Positions 1,575-63,872 of a stretch of DNA of 64,000 nucleotides are shown here, piece by piece. The notes under the pieces were generated by a model. It was not told the DNA's origin and ran no database searches. It saw nothing but the letters and a program-made list of their open reading frames with translations. A program made the translations under genes and the position numbers. Where the stretch lies: positions 248,001 through 312,000 of IMG/VR virus record IMGVR_UViG_3300050821_002957; one strand, written 5' to 3'. Position 1 is the stretch's first letter. Each line of letters begins with the position of its first letter.

Positions 1575-2183
1575 TTAAGAATTTCGATTTTGAGCGAGTC
1601 GTTCATTCTGCTCCAGCATGTACATTTCAAAATACACTGACGACGTGACATCGTTCTCCGCACACGCCAATGCGAGTTTGAAAAACTTTTCGTCAGTCTT
1701 CATGTACTCTTGAAGTTCTGTGATTGCTTGTGCTGCACTCTTAAAAAGAATGCCAATGCCGCCAGCTTCACGCCATGCTTTGATGTTCGCTTCAAAGTCG
1801 TCAATGAGGATGTCGCCGGTCTTTGCGTACTGAGCTTTTTCTTTTTTGTGTGCGACGATCTTTACGAGATCCGGTGTCCACATCAACTCTGGAAGTTCAT
1901 TGTCAAGCCAGATGCGTTTGTGCTCATCACTCTTTTCAATGTGCGAAGACGCAGCAGAAAGAATGCCGGGTGTTGCGACTCGGCTGTATCGCACAAAATT
2001 GAACAGTGCTCGTGCGCCATCGACCCACGGAAGATCCCGAAAGAAATATGGATGATCGTTCAACATCGCCCACTTTTCTTCATTGGACCACTTCATATTG
2101 TGATCCCAAGCCTTGCCGGTTCGACGAGTATAATCACCATCAAATTCGCACAACACGCCATCCATATCAAACCAGACTATCAT
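1575..2183 (-). CDS. HAD 5'(3')-deoxyribonucleotidase (NT5C-like)
   Basis: FDMDGVL motif I, FFRDLP, ILSA, DILIDD motif IV, W-x-x-AGG. Confidence 0.88.
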   Translation of the reverse strand: MIVWFDMDGVLCEFDGDYTRRTGKAWDHNMKWSNEEKWAMLNDHPYFFRDLPWVDGARALFNFVRYSRVATPGILSAASSHIEKSDEHKRIWLDNELPELMWTPDLVKIVAHKKEKAQYAKTGDILIDDFEANIKAWREAGGIGILFKSAAQAITELQEYMKTDEKFFKLALACAENDVTSSVYFEMYMLEQNERLAQNRNS

Positions 2184-6075: not shown

Positions 6076-6453
6076 TTATTTCTTGTCTGCGTCAGCGACC
6101 ACTTTGAATTCACCTGAAGGATCACGACATACAAGGACTTCATGCTTCTTGCCTTCGGAGTCTTTCAATTTTTCTTTTTTGCAAGGACTGGTCGGCTCGA
6201 CATTATAGCCAGCATAGATCGGGAAGCCCCAATAGCTGTACGGATACCAACCATACCCTAAGCCGAAATTGAATCCATAATAACCACCATAGTAACCACG
6301 AACAACCACTGGAGGACGGTAGACTGGCCCATGATAAACCGGCGAAGAATGAAATGCAGGCGCAGGGTGTGAGTAACCACCGCCGCCACGATGTTGTGCA
6401 AATACAAATGACGAACAAAGTAGAAGTGTGAGTGAAAGAATAAAGGTCTTCAT
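6076..6453 (-). CDS. Secreted Gly/Tyr/Pro-rich protein (late)
   Basis: Signal peptide; low-complexity GYYG stretch; TAAATA 5 nt upstream of ATG. Confidence 0.6.
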   Translation of the reverse strand: MKTFILSLTLLLCSSFVFAQHRGGGGYSHPAPAFHSSPVYHGPVYRPPVVVRGYYGGYYGFNFGLGYGWYPYSYWGFPIYAGYNVEPTSPCKKEKLKDSEGKKHEVLVCRDPSGEFKVVADADKK

Positions 6454-6543
6454 ATGCCTATTTAGACGGATCTTCCAAGTAAATATTTGAGTGGTGCTAT
6501 TGAAGCAAGTGGTTGTTTTGAATCACTTTTCATTTACCATGAT

Positions 6544-7224
6544 TCATGATCCATTGCAATTTTCACAGTTGACCGCTGGAATAGGATACTCGCCGCAGAC
6601 GCACAAACGCTCTCTACGCTGTTCAAATGCTTCCTGAAGGTTCGGAGTGCCTGGAAGCGCCGCAAGCTCTTGGAACGCTTCTCTTACGTTTTTTATCACG
6701 TCCGAATTTTGTGTCCCTTCTTGAATGTGCTTGTGCAGCAGTTCGGTCGGCTGATAGTTGTGCAAAAAATGCCACAGTTCCATTGCACCCGACATCAGAG
6801 CCAGATCACGATAGAAATGTGGAGCCTGCTTGAAACGGTTCGCCTTCTTGCTTCCCTTTTCGTCGGGATCGCCACCAAGCGCACGATAAGCTGTGTCGTA
6901 GTCGGCCATGACACCATCAAGATCGACATAGACAACACCAGTCGTTTTGGACCAGTCGATTTCTTTTAATTTACGGATGCAGCTTTCGGCGTCTTTGTAG
7001 ATGATTGCGATTCCCCCGGCATTGATCCACTCAGAGCAATTCTTGGTGTTGTCGTCGATCAGCACATCACCCTTTTTGCAGAGCTTTTGTTTGTCCTGAG
7101 GATAGGCGACGACATGAACCTTCGGCCCTGTCATGTGCAGATGCAGGGCGACCCACTCGATTTTGTCATCGTAGCTGGTCTTTAGGTAATTCGATTTTGC
7201 GCTTAAGATTCTGATGTCTAGCAT
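6544..7224 (-). CDS. Circularly permuted HAD 5'(3')-deoxyribonucleotidase
   Basis: ILSA and GDVLIDD..W..AGG come before VYVDLDGVMADY..FYRDL; motif order is permuted relative to paralog 1575..2183. Confidence 0.8.
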   Translation of the reverse strand: MLDIRILSAKSNYLKTSYDDKIEWVALHLHMTGPKVHVVAYPQDKQKLCKKGDVLIDDNTKNCSEWINAGGIAIIYKDAESCIRKLKEIDWSKTTGVVYVDLDGVMADYDTAYRALGGDPDEKGSKKANRFKQAPHFYRDLALMSGAMELWHFLHNYQPTELLHKHIQEGTQNSDVIKNVREAFQELAALPGTPNLQEAFEQRRERLCVCGEYPIPAVNCENCNGS

Positions 7225-7452
7225 ACCAGTATCTATCGTAGCATACATAGCACTGTCAGCACAACATACACCAATGAAGAAACGTGATGCCATCCTCAAA
7301 CTCGATTCGCTAGAGTGGGCGTTCGAGTGTCATCTGAAATCAAAACTTCCAAGTGATCTGAATTTGACAGACGAGTTTATGACTCTGTTCTACGAGCGGA
7401 CGAAGGAATTGAAAGATGCAATCCAGGCTCTACCGGGCGACAAGAATCACGG

Positions 7453-7929
7453 CTAGTTGTTTTTGTAGCTGCGATTGAAGACGCTTACAATTTCTTCGGT
7501 GAATGAAAGCCTGAACGACGGCGGCTGGACGGCTGTATAATCCCATCCCATAGCAACGGCATAACTCAGTGAGATGTGCGGAACGAACCTATGATACACC
7601 ATGTCTACACCGTGCTCAACTGCAAAATTCCATTGCCGGTCCAGTTCGTTGCATTCAAAAAATAGAGCGAAGGCAGGTCCAATGGTTCCAAGAATGTAAG
7701 TTTCTGGGGCGATGTGAATTTGGCGACGGTCTGGAATGTATTCAGGAGGGAGTTGATTGCAGGCACAGACAACACTACAGTGGAGCTTTTCTTTTGCAAG
7801 AGGACTCGGAATGTGTTGATCCGAAAGCCATTCGTACAAAAGGTTGCGTGATTGAGTTTCTAGCGCCCGAAGTGAATAAACAGCCTCTTCGTGGTTTGCC
7901 TTTCGGTCTGATGCAACTTGGACCAGCAC
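7453..7929 (-). CDS. acb1: T4 57B/Acb1-like 2H phosphodiesterase (anti-CBASS)
   Basis: IPSPLAKEKLHCSV and FVPHISLSY resemble T4 57B VPNPVPREKIHSTI and YTPHITLSY (recalled); GTG start after TAAATA. Confidence 0.8.
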   Translation of the reverse strand: MLVQVASDRKANHEEAVYSLRALETQSRNLLYEWLSDQHIPSPLAKEKLHCSVVCACNQLPPEYIPDRRQIHIAPETYILGTIGPAFALFFECNELDRQWNFAVEHGVDMVYHRFVPHISLSYAVAMGWDYTAVQPPSFRLSFTEEIVSVFNRSYKNN

Positions 7930-9687
7930 TTGATTATTTAGCTTTCTGTGAAGAGAGTTGCAGGCGGTGGAATGAACTGGAAATGTGGGCCTTTGTAATG
8001 AAAGCCGTGGACGTAACTCATGGTTTGGCAGGAATTGTACCATTCGACAATTTGCCTTGCATCGTCGCCTTCTGCAATGTCTTGAGAGCCATCGTCATAA
8101 CGGATGTTGATGTAAATTGCTTTATTCTGTTCGGGCACATTTTGAGTATAGCACCGTCGCCACAGGCGTCAAATTTTCTTCTTTGCCCATCCTTCTGGTG
8201 ACGTTATTTCGGTGCCGAGAAAATACATGGGATCGAAGTCCAGATCACCGATACCTCGTTTCAACACCTTTTCGGGACTGACAATTTTTGAAGCCTGGAC
8301 ACCCTCTACAAAGCCGGGTTCCCGTTCGGCCTTATAGTCAAGGAATTCCAATGTGTGCGCCAGGGCTATGATCTCTTTGCTCTTGTCCATTGTGTGTCAG
8401 ACTTCCTTCAGAACGGTTTCAGCTTCATCTGCGGTGAAGTATCCGACTTTTCCTTTGCCGCACAACCATACTAGCGAATTGCAACAGTGACGGGCAACAT
8501 GGCTTCCATATCCGGCGTCCTTCAGGCGTTGGATCAGATCGTCGCTGATGTATTTGTTGCCATCGCTGTACGGTTCGGTGAAGGCTTCGAGTGCCTTGCG
8601 AATGGTGCTAAGTGCGGTGCGATACTTGTCGGTATGCTCGTCGATTTCTTTCCAGCCTTCATCGGTGAGATTAAACATCATCGAACGATAGCTGGCAAGC
8701 AAACCGTCTTCGAGTTCACTGAATGCTTCTTCAAGTTCGGGCGTCATAGTCCTCCGGTCAGCTTCTTGATTGCTTCGTCATCAAGGCCATACTTCTCGGC
8801 GACCAATGCGGCGTGGTCTGGCTTCAGTGGCAATGGTACGGCCCGGTAATAGCGCCAGAGGCCGTTATGACGCTCTTCGATACGCATGGTCTTCGGACAA
8901 ATCTTCATCCGCACGTCGGGCACAGTAAGATGCATGAACCACATTAGCGTTCAATCCCAGACTTGTTGTACCAGTCGTAAAAGTTCGGCCCATGGAACGC
9001 CGTAAACGAATCAAGAACACGCCTCCTCCGCAGCTTGCCAAACCGGATTTTTCGGAAGTGATCAAGATGATCCAGGATGGCTTGCAGGCTGCTCTGGATC
9101 ACACAAGAGACGACCGAATGCCGGTGACTCATGATGACTTCAGCCACTACCTTGAAGAGGAAGTTTTCAAGGCGATCTGGGACCATCGTCTATTTTCCGA
9201 CCGTCCAGTACATTGAAGAGGAAAACTAATATGCCAATGCCGAAACTTCATACTCTTTCCGATGCCGAACTCGAAGCGGAACTAAGACCTAATGAATCGC
9301 TGGCGACAGACTTTGGATATTTGACAATTTGATGATCGTCGGCATCCATGTTGTTTTCGGCTATGGTGCGACCGAGTTCGAGCATGAATTGAAGATCACT
9401 TATGCCTTCAGGCTTGACGGCGAGACAGGTTTTGCCATACATACCCCGACCCGAATAAGAACGGGTTTCATGCCCCATATCGTTAATCAATTCTTGAAGT
9501 GTCATTTTAATTCTCCTGGAGGCGACGGTAGTATTCTTTCTTGGTACATCTCATAAGTGGTTCCCGGCGACGTGCAGCCAATACCTCTGCTGCAATGCTG
9601 TTTCCGACATCGGCACAACGTTGTAATTCGGCGTCAGAAAATTCGCTGTAGTTGGTGACAGCGTTCGCCAAATGTTCGGGCGACAAT

Positions 9688-19116: not shown

Positions 19117-19665
19117 ATGATCCCGTACTTTGAAAAATTTCCGACCATTGGCTACGACATCAACGGTTCGGGTGAAAAACAAATCGCTATTGATATCCTA
19201 GAGCGCATCAAGATTAGGGACGTTCTCAAACAGAATTGGCTCATCTTCTACAAATACGCAGTGAAGGACGGCGAGACTCCAGAAATGCTCGCCAGCAAAT
19301 TGTACGGTGATCCTCGTTACCATTGGATAATTTTGTTGGCAAATAACATCGTAGATCCGTATTATGATTGGCCGATGAGCAACGACAATCTGATTGCAAC
19401 CATCCGCAAAAAGTACGGGACGCCTCAGATGGATGGCCTAATCTACGCTTACCAAAACATCTACCATTACATTGATTCTTACGGAAATGTGATAGATTTA
19501 GAGACGTACACCAGTCTTCCGGCAAATCAAAGAACTGCCGTCACCGTATACGATTGGGAAGTTTCGCAAAATGAAGCAAAGCGGGAAATTACATTGCTCG
19601 ATCCTTCTTACGTCGAACAGATTGACACGGAAGCAGATAAGATCCTAGCACAGATACTCGTGTAA
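19117..19665 (+). CDS. Baseplate wedge subunit, T4 gp53-like
   Basis: YFEKFPTIGYD; LysM-like DGETPEMLASKLYGDPRYHWIILLANNIVDPYYDWP; NEAKREI.LL; TAAATA 5 nt upstream. Confidence 0.85.
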   Translation: MIPYFEKFPTIGYDINGSGEKQIAIDILERIKIRDVLKQNWLIFYKYAVKDGETPEMLASKLYGDPRYHWIILLANNIVDPYYDWPMSNDNLIATIRKKYGTPQMDGLIYAYQNIYHYIDSYGNVIDLETYTSLPANQRTAVTVYDWEVSQNEAKREITLLDPSYVEQIDTEADKILAQILV

Positions 19666-20266
19666 ATATATCTACCTTTATGACCCCTAGTGGTACTCGA
19701 ATGGTTCCGGCGCTTGTGGGCGAACCGGAAATAACCTTAACCCCAGCCCATCTTTCTCTTGACGATGTTTTGACCGTCGCCGGAAAGTATGAAACCGATC
19801 CTCTTTGCCTTAGCCTTGGACCACTGAAAGGTTCGACCAACAGACATGTCTTTGCTGCGCTTGTGGCGGCGCTGGACACGTCGGGAACCGTTCAGGCACT
19901 ATGGACATCCGAACCGATGTTCAGTAGCGCAGAAGCCGCCCAGGAACATGCAGAAGATGTCATTGGAACAGAACTGTGGCCGTTGCTGTTTTGTGGTGCC
20001 GAATCGAGCCTTTGACAAATCCTGATTTTCGGCTACCATGACCACATGAATCAAGACACATTCGATCAATTTGTAATTGAAATGGTCAATCTGGACGAGC
20101 CGACGTACAAAGAAATTTTAAACATCATTGAACAAGGGCGTCATAACATCGAAAAGGCACAAATCATTAGTGTGCAGAATCAATACATGGTCCGACGATT
20201 GAAAGAACTAGCTCAAGAAGAAGTTGCTGTCGAAGAGCTTTCGAGAATGTTTGACCTACCAACGTC

Positions 20267-28175: not shown

Positions 28176-28916
28176 GTGACCTATTGTATCTACTCCATCA
28201 CAAACAATTTGAACAGAAAACGTTATATAGGATTTACTGGTAACTTTCGTGTTCGGAAGAATAAACACAAAGACTTGTCTCGACGAGGAAGCCTTCAGGC
28301 AATTCATCATGCTATCCGCAAATACGGTTGGGAAAATTTTTCATGGGAAATTCTCTTTGAATCTAGCGACCGTGAACAGACTCTTAATGTAAAAGAGCCG
28401 GAATTCATAAAGCTCTATCAGACACAAAATCCCAAATATGGATACAACCAAACTGCTGGTGGCGAACACTATGTTTTGTCAGAAGAAGCTCGTCACAAAA
28501 TTTCTCTCTCGAAACTAGGAAAGAAGAGACCGCCCCATGTTATTGAAGCTCTGCGACGTGCAAACTTCGGAACCAAACAAAGTGAAGAACGTAAAGCTAG
28601 ACAAAGTGAATTACTAAGACACCGTTATGACCACAAGCCAAATCCAATGAAGGGTCGCAAACTGACCGAGCCGCACAAACAAAAACTCAGGGCAGTACAT
28701 CCACACTTACCACACACCAAAACATCCAAAGCAAAAATTGCAGAAAAGAACAGCCGCCACTGGACCGTTGTCTTCCCGGATGGGCACCAAGAACAAATCG
28801 TGAACATGGCAAAGTTTTGTAGAGAGCACAATCTCCACCAGTCAAATATGTCAGAGACTCAATCGAATGGGAAGACTTACAAAGGATTTAAATGTTGCCG
28901 ATCCGAAATAACTTAA
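28176..28916 (+). mobile_element. Free-standing GIY-YIG homing endonuclease with NUMOD3-like repeats
   Basis: CIYSITN..NRKRYIG, AIRKYG.ENF, GYN.T.GG, SEE.R.KIS; TATAAATA promoter. Confidence 0.88.
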
Positions 28917-30010
28917 GCCTGCTTGCGTCTCGTGCGCTTAACCACTGGAGCCGTCTCTTCGACTTGAGTTCCATCATGATCAGGTAGAAGAATCTCGTCA
29001 CCTTCTTCAGGCGCTTCGATTTCCCATTCAATTTTTCCTTCGACCGCTTTGCAATAGACATACGATCCAGGAGAAATTTTGCCGTCAATAAAGTCGTCTG
29101 CGAGAGGATTGAGAAGGAATCGGTTGATTACTCGCTTTAACTCTCGTGCGCCATACTGAATGCTCGTGCCGGTTTTAGTGAGCAACTCAAGAGATGGTTC
29201 ATCATAGTTCATGAAGAAGCCTTTGTTTCCGAGGCGTTCCATAATCTGCGTCTGAATCTTGTTGAGTTCTAGAGTTGTAATCTTTTTTAACATGTCAGGA
29301 CTTAGCGGTTTGTATGTGACCACTTCATCGACACGATTTGGAAACTCAGGTGGAAATTTGCGTGCTAATGCTCCAAGACCAATTCTCTGAATAGCAGCAA
29401 AATTATGATCGCTGAATGCATCAGTAGTAATCGGACCTTGAAGTTTGTTGAAACCGAAGCCGCCTGTGAACATTTCCGACATTTCTTTTGCGCCAAGGTT
29501 AGAAGACATGAAAATAACTGTCTTCTGAAAATCTGCGCTGGTATTGTCTCCCAGGCGAAGGGTTGCTTTATCGAGAATACCGAGTAATACTCTCCAGAGA
29601 GACGCACTACCCTTTTCAATTTCGTCGAAGAGAATAATTGAAATAGGAGATTTTTCAGTAGCTACAGCATTGATCTTGGCCTGCGAAAACACCGGATGTG
29701 TTTCACGATGTCCCAAGTAACCAGGAGGAGCACCGATCAGCTTCGCAACTTCATGTTCCATCTGAAATTCGCCACAATCGATTCTTAGTACATTTTTGTC
29801 TGTACCGTGAAGAACTTCTGAAAGTGTCTCAGCAGTTCTGGTCTTACCTGTTCCCGTAGGTCCCATCAAGAAGAAGACACCGACCGGGCGACCTGGAGCA
29901 TTCAATCCAGCCATCGCACGCACAATGTACGGGATGATCTTGTCGATTGCATGATCCTGTCCAACGATCAACTTCTTCCACGCTTCGGCCAGTTCTTGTG
30001 ATTTCATCAT
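28913..30010 (-). CDS. ClpA/B-like ATPase containing only the second (D2) AAA module
   Basis: IVGQDHAI, GPTGTGKT, KLIGAPPGYLG, LFDEIEK, MSSNLG, GARELKR; FGF loop. Confidence 0.88.
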   Translation of the reverse strand: MMKSQELAEAWKKLIVGQDHAIDKIIPYIVRAMAGLNAPGRPVGVFFLMGPTGTGKTRTAETLSEVLHGTDKNVLRIDCGEFQMEHEVAKLIGAPPGYLGHRETHPVFSQAKINAVATEKSPISIILFDEIEKGSASLWRVLLGILDKATLRLGDNTSADFQKTVIFMSSNLGAKEMSEMFTGGFGFNKLQGPITTDAFSDHNFAAIQRIGLGALARKFPPEFPNRVDEVVTYKPLSPDMLKKITTLELNKIQTQIMERLGNKGFFMNYDEPSLELLTKTGTSIQYGARELKRVINRFLLNPLADDFIDGKISPGSYVYCKAVEGKIEWEIEAPEEGDEILLPDHDGTQVEETAPVVKRTRRKQA

Positions 30011-33662: not shown

Positions 33663-34913
33663 CTAGAGACGCCCGGAACGGATCAGTTCGAGGGCCTGTT
33701 CTTTCGATTTGATGTGACCGGCAAGCTGCCCATTCTCGGCGGCGTCCAGGATTCGTTTGAAATCTGGTCCTGGCTTCATTCCAAGTGCCTTCAGATCATC
33801 CCCATTGACAAATTTTGCCGGATTCAAGTCTTCGGCCTTCATGTTGGCAAACATTTTTGACAACATCTGGAAAGCAGCGATATGGACGTGCTTGTCCTGA
33901 GCCTCTGTACGGCATCCATAGAGCTTCAAGGCGTCGGGGAACAGCTTCTCACGCATCAGGCGTTTCAACACGTCCAGCGTCGTTCCAGCCGTCACAGAAC
34001 CGATTCTGGACTGAAGGTCGATGATGCCGGTAATCTGCTTGATCGTGTCGTTAAAAAACTTCAGACGTTTACCAATTTTTTCTGCGCTCCCTGAAGGCAA
34101 CATGTACAACGCACCAGCCAAACCCAATGCTGGATTGATGTTGGTGCCGATGAACGAAAGTGTTGCCATCATCTGAGCGTAATCATACGGAGTCATGTGG
34201 GCAACTTCCGGCAGAACATGCTCTAAGATGCCGGTGTTGTTCATTCCCTTGATTGTCTTGTGAGCGTCATGACCCATTGCCTTGGTCAATTCCTCTGTTA
34301 TGCGCTCTACGTCCATTTTCGCAATGTTCGGAGCGTGCGCCTGCATTGCCGCCAGTGTCTCTGGGTGGATCTCAAATCCGAGCTTCGCCTGAAAACGATG
34401 TGCCCGAAGCATCCGAAGATGATCCTGTGTAAAACGGTCGTTCGGATTGCCGACACATTTGATGAGGCCGTTTTTTGCATCGGCCTTGCCACCATGAAAA
34501 TCGATGATGTCACCAGTGAACGGGTCCATGTACATTGCATTGACGGTGAAGTCACGCCGGTTGGAATCTTGTTGTTGATCACGAGTGTATTCGACATCAT
34601 CTGGACGCCGACCATCAGTGTACTTTCCATCTTTGCGGAATGTGGCAATGTCGATACCGTGGCAGACAACGACACCAAATGATTTTCCTACGACACTTGT
34701 TCCTGGGAAAAGTTTGAGAACTTCTTCAGGTGTGGCGTCAGTTGCTACGTCAAAATCTTTTGGCTTGTGGCCGGTCAAAAAATCACGAACACAACCGCCA
34801 GCGAGATAGCCGACAAAGCCGTGTCTGCGAAGCGTAGTGATTACGTCTTTGGCGTCGTCAAGCGTGCCATAGGTGGACTCCCGAAGGAGGGCGAATTGTG
34901 TAAATGAGAGCAC
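33663..34913 (-). CDS. cca: CCA tRNA nucleotidyltransferase (class II, no HD domain) with capsid-targeting-like N-terminus
   Basis: GGCVRD..DFDVAT, RKD plus flexible loop Y.DGRRP, RRDFTVNA, QDHLRMLR; N-term MLSFTQFALLRE; TAAATA promoter. Confidence 0.88.
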   Translation of the reverse strand: MLSFTQFALLRESTYGTLDDAKDVITTLRRHGFVGYLAGGCVRDFLTGHKPKDFDVATDATPEEVLKLFPGTSVVGKSFGVVVCHGIDIATFRKDGKYTDGRRPDDVEYTRDQQQDSNRRDFTVNAMYMDPFTGDIIDFHGGKADAKNGLIKCVGNPNDRFTQDHLRMLRAHRFQAKLGFEIHPETLAAMQAHAPNIAKMDVERITEELTKAMGHDAHKTIKGMNNTGILEHVLPEVAHMTPYDYAQMMATLSFIGTNINPALGLAGALYMLPSGSAEKIGKRLKFFNDTIKQITGIIDLQSRIGSVTAGTTLDVLKRLMREKLFPDALKLYGCRTEAQDKHVHIAAFQMLSKMFANMKAEDLNPAKFVNGDDLKALGMKPGPDFKRILDAAENGQLAGHIKSKEQALELIRSGRL

Positions 34914-48220: not shown

Positions 48221-48296
48221 TGGTTGGCCCAGATGGAATCGAACCATCAACCTCAGAATTATCAGTTCTGCGCTCTACCAATTGAGCTATGGGCCA
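48221..48296 (-). tRNA. tRNA-Ile(GAT)
   Basis: TGGCCCA/TGGGCCA, CAGAA-CTGATAA-TTCTG, ACCA. Confidence 0.95.
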
Positions 48297-48381: not shown

Positions 48382-50175
48382 CTACTCTTCGGTCTCTTCT
48401 GCGATCCCAGCACTTGAACCACGAATAAAATCCGTAACCAATGCTGGAACATTCGAGTCGAACCCAACGATGTCCAAAGAATACGGGTCCTTCGGATCTG
48501 CGATGGTAAATTGCGTAGAAACCATTCCCATCACGATCAGGCGCACATCATCCTGCCCACGATGCTTACGATACTGCTTGAGAGCCTGCGACGGTTGCAT
48601 TTGTCCAGCCCAAGTCTCATTATCCGTGATCACCATGAAAGCGTCTGCGTCGATGCCAGCCTTTTGAGCGTGAAGCATCGGTGCAGCACAATCGGTTCCA
48701 CCAGCCGACATGCGAGAGGTCTTTGCCAACGCAGTCTTCAGAGTGTCCTTTGCGGTGATGCCAATTTCCTGCATTCCCGTAGAAAATGCATAGATAGCGT
48801 AATTCGGTTCCGTGCGAGCCACAACCATCGCCATTGCTGCGCCTGCTTGTGCTGCCGTGATTCCGGTGCCTTGGATGATGCTGGACGCCCACGACATAGA
48901 ACCAGAAACGTCCATGCCAATGTACGTAGCCTTACCAGTCGGAATTGCGTTTGCGAATGCCAAGTAGAACGTGTTCTCTAAAGCGTCCACAATGGTCGGT
49001 ACAACGGTCCAGGTCGCATCGCTGCGCTGACCGTGGCCTTGGCCGTAGGTGCCTTGTGCCAACAATACCTGGAGCGGGTGAATCTTGCTCTTCTTGACGT
49101 AGGCTTCATCGTTCAAACGAGACACGACGAGCTTCGATGCTGCCGACAGCGGCTTCAAGAGACCAATCTTCGACATGGTTCCAAGATTACGAACCATTGC
49201 AGTTACCGGCATCTTCTGAAGCAGAGCTTCCCAGACTTCCGGTTGCGTCTTAAACTGCGTCGGAATCATTTCGTGAGTCAATCCACCGTCGATGATGCAC
49301 TTTACGATAGTGCTCGTATCCGTCGCCTTCTTTGCGGTTTCATAGGCGGTGATCAACTTCGGTGCGTTCGATCCGGTCAACAAATCATAAGCGTTCTGAT
49401 AGCGAGCACGCTGATTCTGAATTTCCGCAGAAGTCAGATCAGTCGTGCGATGGCTGTTGCCCTGCCACTTCTTGACAGAACGAGTCCAGTTCTGAGCAGC
49501 TTCGTTCAAGGCATCGAGACCACCGAAACGACCCCAAGCCAGCAAAGCACTCTTCATCGGATCAGTCGCCTTGACGTGTGCGAGGCTGACGAGATCACGA
49601 GTGGACCAGCCATCACGCTGTTGATACTTCGCCAACTGATAAGCCAGCGAATCTTCCGTGCGTTCGGTGTACCAGTTGCCGATTGCAGTCTTTACACCAC
49701 GACCGTATCCACGCATGGAATCGAGGTACTCGTTGAAGTGGAACATGTGAGTACCGATACGTGCAACCTTGCTCAATTGCGACAGAGCATAAGCAGCAGT
49801 TTCAGCCGAACCAAAATTCGGTGTTGCGGCAACTGCCAGGGCAAACAATGCCGGATCGTTCTTCGGAGCACGGCCTGCTTGCGAAATGTTGACGATCATA
49901 TCGACCGTGCGCTTTCCATCCAACTGCAAGCACGCACGAACGTTCGCTGCGTTGTCTACAGTCATCTTCTTGGCAGATGCATAGTACGTCGGCGCATCGC
50001 TACCGAGAATCAAAAATCGTTCGAGCATCTGGAAGGGAGTGATGGTGAAGGTGTATCCACCAGCGTTGTTCTGCTTCATCTCTGCTTCCCGGCCCGGAAT
50101 TGCCTGCGACTGTGATGTCTTCTTGCCGCTTAATACCGTTGCGTAATTGCTCTTTGCTGATCCTGCCTTTGCCAT
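48382..50175 (-). CDS. rsr: Ro60/Rsr TROVE-domain RNA-binding protein
   Basis: NNAGGY, RFLILGS, GRAPKNDPALFALA, KYQQRDGWS, RNLG.M, IHP, vWA DVSGSM, TDNETW, GFD; AGGAGA SD before ATG 50175. Confidence 0.95.
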   Translation of the reverse strand: MAKAGSAKSNYATVLSGKKTSQSQAIPGREAEMKQNNAGGYTFTITPFQMLERFLILGSDAPTYYASAKKMTVDNAANVRACLQLDGKRTVDMIVNISQAGRAPKNDPALFALAVAATPNFGSAETAAYALSQLSKVARIGTHMFHFNEYLDSMRGYGRGVKTAIGNWYTERTEDSLAYQLAKYQQRDGWSTRDLVSLAHVKATDPMKSALLAWGRFGGLDALNEAAQNWTRSVKKWQGNSHRTTDLTSAEIQNQRARYQNAYDLLTGSNAPKLITAYETAKKATDTSTIVKCIIDGGLTHEMIPTQFKTQPEVWEALLQKMPVTAMVRNLGTMSKIGLLKPLSAASKLVVSRLNDEAYVKKSKIHPLQVLLAQGTYGQGHGQRSDATWTVVPTIVDALENTFYLAFANAIPTGKATYIGMDVSGSMSWASSIIQGTGITAAQAGAAMAMVVARTEPNYAIYAFSTGMQEIGITAKDTLKTALAKTSRMSAGGTDCAAPMLHAQKAGIDADAFMVITDNETWAGQMQPSQALKQYRKHRGQDDVRLIVMGMVSTQFTIADPKDPYSLDIVGFDSNVPALVTDFIRGSSAGIAEETEE

Positions 50176-50250
50176 ATCATTATCTCCTATGATACCTAAT
50201 TTTTTCGACTTCACCAGAATAACACATGCCTGATTGTTGTCAAGCATGTA

Positions 50251-62445: not shown

Positions 62446-62748
62446 TTATTCCTCGTCGTTAATATCTAGCCAATCGGGAGCTTCCCAGGTTCGGTGAATA
62501 ACTCTGACGTAGATTACACCTTCTTCTTCGTCAAGATTCCATTCAAGATCATCGCCAACTTCTATGTTCAATTCACGAACTAATCCATCTGGCAGTGTCA
62601 TCATTCCGTTCGGTTGTATGACACAGGCATATGACCTATTACCAAATCCAGAGTTCACCCAGACACCTAAAATGGGTGGTTCATCATTATCTTCAGTCGG
62701 CTCTTCGTCAAAGTCTTCCGGTTCTAGCTCTGCGTAATCTTCAGCCAT
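62446..62748 (-). CDS. AbrB/MazE-like DNA-binding protein
   Basis: IQPNG.MTLP..LVRELNIEVGDDLEW. Confidence 0.7.
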   Translation of the reverse strand: MAEDYAELEPEDFDEEPTEDNDEPPILGVWVNSGFGNRSYACVIQPNGMMTLPDGLVRELNIEVGDDLEWNLDEEEGVIYVRVIHRTWEAPDWLDINDEE

Positions 62749-63872
62749 TTTCTTCCTACCCGAATCACTGACATTTCTGGCAACGGTTCTTTGAGTCTTG
62801 GATCGATAACTACACTACCATTTACATTTACGGCTCCGCTCTTCACCAGACGACTGCCCTCTGAGACCGAAGATGCCAAACCCATCAGCACCAAGACTCG
62901 ATCCAGGCGTGTATTGACCGAATGAAAAACCGGAATTCTTACAACTGGAATATCGACCGGCGCTTCACGATCTGAAAATCTCTTTGTCCATTCAATTTCA
63001 GCGGTGTCTGCTTTTGGTTCGTCATGTAACCAATGAACAATTCGCCATGCCAAATATTTCTTAGATTGAAATGGTTGAGGATGCCAGCCACATTTATTTG
63101 GAAACAGAACCTCTTGCCATTGGCGCATTACATCATCAGCAATCGACATAACTTTGCTGAACATTTCAAATGGTTCATCCAGCAAACCAATGTGATTACC
63201 GAACGACTTGGACATCTTTCGACCGTCCGTACCAAACAACAAAGGAACCGTCGCAATAACCTGAGGTTTCTCACCACGATCATGCATGTACATCCGGCCC
63301 ATCAGCATGTTGTAAAATTGATCGTTGCCGCCAAGTTCAATATCTACACCTTCTCTGAAAGAGTCATATGCCTGAAGCATGGGGTATAACATCTCATGCA
63401 TAAAGACCGGAGTGTTTGTTACCTTGCGTTCTTTAAAATCGTCACGGCCACCGATTTGACTGAGGGTGAAATGGGACATGAGACGAATTACATCTTGCAT
63501 CTTCATCTCGTCAAACCATTCGGCATTCTTTTTGACGACGGTTTTGGTTCGATCCAAAATTTTGAAAGCCTGTGTCATATAGCTCCAGGCGTTCGTATTG
63601 ATTTCATCGTCAGAAAGCGCAGGCCGAAGCTGATTGCGCCCGGTCGGATCACCAATCGATGCTGTGGTGTTGCCGACGATCATCACAATGGTGTGCCCAG
63701 CATCCTGAAATTCACGCATCTTTTTCAACAGCACAGCATGACCAAGATGTAGGTCTGGTGCTGTGGGATCGAATCCGGCTTTCACACGTAACGGATGACC
63801 TGACGCAATAAGAGCATCAAACTCCTTTTCGTCGAGGAGTTGCGTAAACCCGGATTTGAGTGATTGTTGCAC
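62724..63872 (-). CDS. tyrS: Tyrosyl-tRNA synthetase
   Basis: GFDPTAPDLHLGH, GDPTGR, YP.LQAYD, GG.DQ, KMSKS, C-terminal S4 domain. Confidence 0.97.
   Translation of the reverse strand: MQQSLKSGFTQLLDEKEFDALIASGHPLRVKAGFDPTAPDLHLGHAVLLKKMREFQDAGHTIVMIVGNTTASIGDPTGRNQLRPALSDDEINTNAWSYMTQAFKILDRTKTVVKKNAEWFDEMKMQDVIRLMSHFTLSQIGGRDDFKERKVTNTPVFMHEMLYPMLQAYDSFREGVDIELGGNDQFYNMLMGRMYMHDRGEKPQVIATVPLLFGTDGRKMSKSFGNHIGLLDEPFEMFSKVMSIADDVMRQWQEVLFPNKCGWHPQPFQSKKYLAWRIVHWLHDEPKADTAEIEWTKRFSDREAPVDIPVVRIPVFHSVNTRLDRVLVLMGLASSVSEGSRLVKSGAVNVNGSVVIDPRLKEPLPEMSVIRVGRKWLKITQS

Follow-up and report, generated by a model that had tools for sequence, protein, structure and literature searches.

The results presented here reveal that a jumbo phage from soil harbors a gene for a 5'(3')-deoxyribonucleotidase-type (NT5C, PF06941) member of the HAD superfamily in which the two halves of the predicted catalytic domain are in swapped order compared with its relatives. 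The window analyzed is a 64,000-nucleotide stretch, bases 248001-312000, of a 405,631-bp IMG/VR virus record (IMGVR_UViG_3300050821_002957) that CheckV rates as complete. Within it, a single open reading frame of 226 codons on the minus strand (6544..7224; ATG at 7224, TGA at 6546-6544) places the segment with motifs II, III and IV first, followed by an 8-residue linker, motif I with the cap, and a C-terminal tail. A first-pass annotation of the sequence had described this ORF as a naturally circularly permuted HAD nucleotidase lying near its normal paralog, and that observation is confirmed. We place the probability that this is a functional gene for a Mg2+-dependent HAD phosphohydrolase with a circularly permuted catalytic domain at roughly 0.8. 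The features of the locus are as follows, where proteins retrieved from databases are designated P and related loci L.

6544..7224 (-): the whole permuted NT5C-type HAD gene, 226 aa plus stop
6961..7224 (-): C block, residues 1-88, with strands S2-S5, motif II (S8), an invariant K21, motif III (K45), motif IV (D57, D58) and the last core helix
6937..6960 (-): linker, residues 89-96 (I-DWSKTTG), joining the old C terminus of the core to the old N terminus
6748..6936 (-): N block, residues 97-159, with strand S1 and motif I (D101, the nucleophile, and D103), the flap, a small helical cap with the FYRDL motif, and helix alpha1
6547..6747 (-): C-terminal tail, residues 160-226, with three xEAF-type repeats and then CxC-x10-CxxC (C208, C210, C221, C224; nt 6553-6603)
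7230..7235 (-): TAGATA hexamer, 5 nt before the ATG
7274..7456 (+): small conserved gene of about 60 aa, transcribed divergently, with its start 49 bp from the ATG of the permuted gene
7453..8043 (-): Acb1-like gene (anti-CBASS 2H phosphodiesterase family), the conserved upstream neighbor
1575..2183 (-): normal-order NT5C paralog
6076..6453 (-): 125-aa protein with a signal peptide and a Gly/Tyr-rich region, directly downstream of the permuted gene and conserved in L001, a related locus described below

The swapped order is evident from several comparisons. BLASTP against the paralog at 1575..2183 (-) gives two blocks in swapped order: residues 6-88 match paralog residues 74-159 (38% identity, E 1e-14), and residues 97 to about 155 match paralog residues 2 to about 62 (E 2e-9). 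Each motif occurs once when read directly from the sequence: motif II is ILSA (S8, nt 7198-7209), motif III is K45, motif IV is DVLIDD (D57/D58, nt 7051-7068), and motif I is DLDGV (D101/D103, nt 6910-6924), which conforms to DxDx(T/V). Thus, the order along the chain is II-III-IV-I rather than the canonical I-II-III-IV of the HAD superfamily, a difference in chain connectivity and not in homology. Motif IV precedes motif I in only 4 of the 166 homologs retrieved, plus the window protein. A tblastn block map to the normal-order proteins P0003, P0004 and P0006 gives the same result; the C block equals P0003 residues 63-149 at 70% identity and the N block equals P0003 residues 3-65 at about 58% identity. 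A profile built from the alignment of permuted proteins matches the solved NT5C enzymes (3bwv, 1mh9, 2i7d, 4mum) in two stretches in swapped order, with matches reaching E 2.5e-5; profile positions 90-152 are matched by residues 5-84 of these chains. The Pfam NT5C profile scores 29 bits against a gathering cut-off of 24.8, but on the first block only (profile positions 84-145); a profile search of genomes gave 28.3 bits with its neighbors in the frame. PHROG 2643, annotated as 5'-3' deoxyribonucleotidase, scores 4.5e-26 in two stretches. By comparison, the paralog matches Pfam NT5C at 1.3e-10 over residues 1-152. A third, weak NT5C-like match occurs elsewhere in the same phage genome (L004, G000:C1:361690-362109, minus strand; 15.4 bits, below the cut-off).

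The arrangement is not restricted to one assembly. A word-indexed protein search returned two full-length proteins (P0001 at 80% and P0002 at 74% identity) and one fragment (P0005) with the same swapped order, along with more than a dozen relatives in the normal order. An exhaustive search of 1.84 billion cluster representatives added one more permuted fragment, P0022 (55% identity), and among the 150 best representatives found no other protein colinear across the junction. A metagenome scan added L014 (85% identity, same length) and L013 (identical, on a 321-kb contig), whereas a scan of IMG/VR returned only normal-order relatives. The five further variants are 55-85% identical and include the fragment P0005; the permuted genes come from ENA project GROS21-1 (three samples; L005, L006 and L007), JGI 3300044581 (L008), JGI 3300042959 (L019/P0022) and Ga0210389 (L014). 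Logan's independent assembly of one sequencing run (X1) spans the gene in a 178,905-bp contig with 0 differences, and a run from a second sample and study (X2) holds the new 5' end (6988-7647) identically, although the C-to-N junction itself (about 6937-6960) is not covered in X2. The linker is in frame in all six variants; its D and W are conserved and the rest varies. The L008 ortholog has a 15-nt tandem duplication of the start region (MLDID-MLDIR; L008:1170-1200), giving two in-frame ATGs.

Both halves of the gene are under strong purifying selection. Nei-Gojobori estimates among the four available DNA sequences give dN/dS of 0.06-0.12 overall, 0.04-0.12 for the C block and 0.03-0.11 for the N block, with dS from 0.9 to over 2, that is, to saturation. 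The linker is freer and the tail is intermediate (0.09-0.35). The columns invariant across 60 normal-order homologs are D6, D8, G9, K81, K105, D117, D118 and G131 of P0003, and all are present in the window protein, as D101, D103, G104, K21, K45, D57, D58 and G71.

AlphaFold2 predicts a confident fold for the permuted protein. The model has a mean pLDDT of 90.2 and pTM of 0.74, with pLDDT of 93-98 for residues 1-160, including 96-98 for the linker, and 63-80 for the tail, which is modeled as helices plus a beta hairpin. The predicted elements are ordered S2-H-S3-H-S4-H-S5-H, linker, S1, flap, cap helices, alpha1 and tail; the model of normal-order P0003 (pLDDT 92.7) has exactly the same elements starting from S1. 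The alignment used for the prediction combined the permuted proteins with separately aligned pieces of normal-order homologs, so inter-block coevolution comes from only five permuted rows. Structure searches aligned only model residues 1 to about 91, always to the C-terminal half of HAD or NT5C proteins: 3bwv_B residues 83-178 at an rmsd of 1.9 A (Z 5.7), AFDB clusters at 2.0 A, the ESM Atlas at 1.4 A and BFVD at 2.2 A. No full-length structural counterpart was found in the PDB, AFDB clusters, BFVD or the ESM Atlas. Foldseek against the PDB found no hit at E <= 1e-3 for the permuted model and only noise, whereas the control, the normal-order P0003 model, gave 38 hits led by 3bwv, mdN and cdN over 150-170 columns. 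This contrast is what a permutation should produce with aligners that depend on sequence order, as all those used here do. For the same reason, the placement of S1 in the center of the sheet is inferred from model confidence and not from an explicit superposition.

Only the HAD domain is permuted. P0003 and P0004, the normal-order counterparts in related jumbo phages (58-70% identical per block), carry the same tail after the core, whereas in the permuted proteins the tail of roughly 65 residues follows alpha1. The change is therefore from N-C-tail to C-linker-N-tail, and the whole protein is not a cyclic rotation of its relatives. The tails of this phage subfamily (window 6553-6747, minus strand, and P0003-P0015) consist of 2-3 repeats of a short N(V/L)xEAF motif, and some members add the CxC-x10-CxxC element. 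The window protein and L014 have one additional 15-residue repeat. A long BLAST extension suggested that residues 160-180 might be a degenerate second motif-II strand, but this was rejected because the segment is the extra xEAF-type repeat shared with L014.

The permuted form has a single derived origin. A maximum-likelihood tree of 51 proteins and 151 kept columns, built from the two blocks aligned separately and then concatenated, places the five permuted proteins in one clade (98/90 support) nested within normal-order proteins. The sister clade is P0010/11/13/20, followed by P0003/4/12. The paralog 5 kb away falls in a different clade, with P0055; it is an old companion belonging to a separate lineage and is not the source. 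The window is colinear gene by gene (50-80% amino-acid identity) with L001, part of a 370-kb phage contig that encodes P0004. The shared order is GP88, DUF2958, Acb1-like, the small divergent gene, NT5C, a Gly/Tyr-rich protein and DUF6527, and so on to the second NT5C paralog, whose L001 ortholog is at 19312-19953. Thus, the permuted gene is the positional ortholog of a normal-order gene, a rare natural case in which the rearranged and normal forms of an enzyme sit at the same spot in related genomes. The small divergent gene, which has no family match, is conserved in L005, L007, L008 and L001. The Acb1-like neighbor (PF23474 at 1.6e-13) also occurs in L008, L020 and the contigs of P0003 and P0004; a CTAAATA motif inside its 5' part, together with shorter orthologs (160-162 aa), suggests that its true start is about 36 codons downstream of the first ATG.

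The central interpretation of the first-pass annotation, a natural permutation of a HAD nucleotidase that retains all motifs once and is not a relic, is supported by four independent lines, the two-block homology, the further permuted orthologs in other assemblies, purifying selection and a confident fold prediction, with corrections concerning the tail, the paralog and the evidence for expression. The annotation had cited the TAGATA box as a late-like element that makes the gene look expressed rather than a relic. The box is present, but it is absent upstream of the orthologs in L005 and L008, and the hexamer is only weakly enriched in the window (22 against 13.7 +/- 3.7 expected), so it is not informative. 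The motifs enriched within 40 nt upstream of the long ORFs of the window are CTAAATA and GTTGACA, neither of which precedes the permuted gene. CTAAATA occurs 11 times against 4.1 expected and may be a promoter-like element of this phage; it lies at 6459-6465 (-), 5 nt before the ATG of the downstream 125-aa protein. No Shine-Dalgarno motif precedes the ATG in any permuted ortholog, whereas the normal-order L001 gene has AAGGAG. The possibility that the linker derives from an old ribosome-binding site was dropped, since GGAG is present in L005 but not in the window or L008. A search for RNA runs listed none. Expression is therefore inferred from selection only.

Taken together, the analysis establishes the path of the chain from S2 through motifs III and IV to the last core helix, the linker, S1 with the cap and alpha1, and the tail; the single origin inside a clade of jumbo-phage NT5C genes; the occupation of the locus held by the normal-order gene in a related phage; and diversification since then under purifying selection. 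It is inferred that the two blocks reassemble the usual Rossmannoid sheet, such that D101 (nucleophile), D103 (acid/base), S8 and K45 (phosphate binding) and D57/D58 (Mg2+) form the standard HAD active site. By the general HAD topology, the new termini, in the alpha1-S2 loop, and the linker, which joins the end of the last helix to the start of S1, would both lie on the face of the sheet opposite the active site. Enzyme activity is likewise inferred from family membership; the protein is most likely a Mg2+-dependent aspartyl-phosphate phosphatase, the likely substrates are (deoxy)nucleoside monophosphates, and the role would be reshaping the nucleotide pool, perhaps linked to the adjacent Acb1 gene. 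The conserved position directly downstream of an Acb1-family gene raises the possibility of a role in an anti-defense or nucleotide-clearing module.

The mechanism of rearrangement is also inferred. The inferred origin is the classical route of a tandem duplication of the N-C unit, followed by loss of the first N block and the second C block. A tandem N-C-N-C fusion (P0125, 362 aa) indicates that the postulated intermediate does occur in this family, but it is a distant member, carries both full copies with a degenerate second motif I (GPNG), and is not an ancestor of the permuted clade. Connector-like peptides resembling the normal core-to-tail connector occur at both new junctions, although these stretches are too short to test. 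No intermediate, such as N-C-N-tail, was found among close relatives, and no relic of a lost first N block was found upstream or downstream in the permuted loci. All four normal-order contexts have an extra, mutually unrelated gene between the small divergent gene and NT5C, usually overlapping the start of the latter: an HNH endonuclease-like gene in L001 (L001:9636-10010; phrog_3322 at 4e-20), a 309-aa protein with faint HTH/LAGLIDADG hits in the P0003 contig, a 218-aa gene in a second P0004 contig and a 102-aa gene in L020 (L020:1753-2061). In the permuted loci this slot is empty, with only 34-49 bp to the divergent gene. The 5' end of the gene is thus a likely hot spot for recombination and homing-endonuclease gene insertion. 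A more speculative and unlikely reading, which is not excluded, is that the permutation was no neutral accident but a product of double-strand-break repair at such a hot spot, and that relocating the 5' segment became fixed because it removes the endonuclease target or insertion site next to the gene start. Alternatively, re-anchoring the tail could give the enzyme a new partner or substrate in an anti-defense module with Acb1. Either way, selfish-element conflict would drive the re-threading of an enzyme fold.

Other explanations appear less likely. It is possible, though doubtful, that the protein keeps the fold but is no longer a nucleotidase, acting instead on another phospho-substrate (nucleic-acid ends or products of the neighboring Acb1 phosphodiesterase) or serving as a binding protein. 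The tail with its xEAF repeats and zinc-ribbon-like element is now attached after alpha1 instead of after the last core helix, the gene is conserved next to Acb1, and the Pfam match is modest. However, all invariant catalytic and family-specific residues and the FYRDL cap motif are kept, and normal-order orthologs have the same tail and the same Acb1 neighborhood, so nothing about substrate need have changed with the permutation. It is similarly unlikely that the chain cannot close on itself and instead forms an intertwined domain-swapped dimer, with the first block of one chain paired with the second block of another. The linker is short and mammalian NT5C enzymes are homodimers, and the monomer prediction cannot distinguish the two cases. 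Nevertheless, pLDDT is 96-98 for the linker and both adjoining elements, pTM is 0.74 despite a floppy tail, and in Rossmannoid HAD folds the start of S1 and the end of the last helix lie on the same face.

A decaying leftover of a tandem duplication, or an otherwise non-functional gene, is strongly disfavored. The absence of a recognizable ribosome-binding site or promoter and of listed RNA runs would be consistent with a relic, but the low dN/dS in both blocks with saturated synonymous change, the frame open in six variants down to 55% identity and the intact catalytic residues argue against it. An assembly chimera is refuted for practical purposes, despite the metagenomic source and the uncovered junction in X2, because the same order occurs with diverged sequences in assemblies from several projects and assemblers and the Logan contig is identical over the whole stretch.

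The window also encodes a ClpX-like AAA protein (28913-30010) and a translation-related set: a CCA-adding tRNA nucleotidyltransferase and a tyrosyl-tRNA synthetase (33663-34913 and 62724-63872, both minus strand), and eight tRNA genes between 3505 and 48296 (Val, Tyr, Asn x2, Trp, Ala x2 and Ile). A Ro60/TROVE protein with a vWA domain (48382-50247, minus strand) is followed immediately by the tRNA-Ile gene (48221-48296, minus strand); Ro60 proteins normally work with Y RNAs.

Circular permutation and the NT5C/HAD family are both known, but no description of a permuted HAD-superfamily enzyme was found in the literature that could be searched, and searches for a link between phage NT5C and Acb1 found nothing relevant. 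Human mdN and cdN (1MH9, 2I7D) and the S. epidermidis homolog 3BWV share the four HAD motifs, the family-specific residues, the small helical cap and the core fold of the second half with the phage protein, but have the two halves in the opposite order and lack the tail with xEAF repeats and CxC...CxxC element. P0003 and P0004 differ in the order of the blocks, in having a Shine-Dalgarno site, and in the variable gene directly upstream. Other natural circular permutations explained by duplication followed by terminal loss include DNA methyltransferases, for which permuted forms in jumbo phages are mentioned (PMC7824862). Swaposins are another example. As in those cases, a single domain is re-threaded with new termini in a surface loop and the old termini joined by a short linker, and the permuted and normal forms are clearly homologous. 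Here, however, a C-terminal appendage stayed in place, so an internal in-frame deletion is needed in addition to loss of the 5' segment.

Natural circular permutants are usually inferred between distant relatives. In this family, the permuted and normal forms share 58-70% identity per block, which is unusually close, as well as the same flanking genes, and several diverged descendants of the permuted form exist. Folding, stability, cap dynamics and catalysis can therefore be compared directly between natural alleles, and the duplication-deletion route is open to test through intermediates. The case also exposes a blind spot in annotation: Pfam sees only half of the domain, and Foldseek finds no significant PDB match for a confidently predicted HAD fold. 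Such permutants will be missed or mis-annotated in viral metagenomes.
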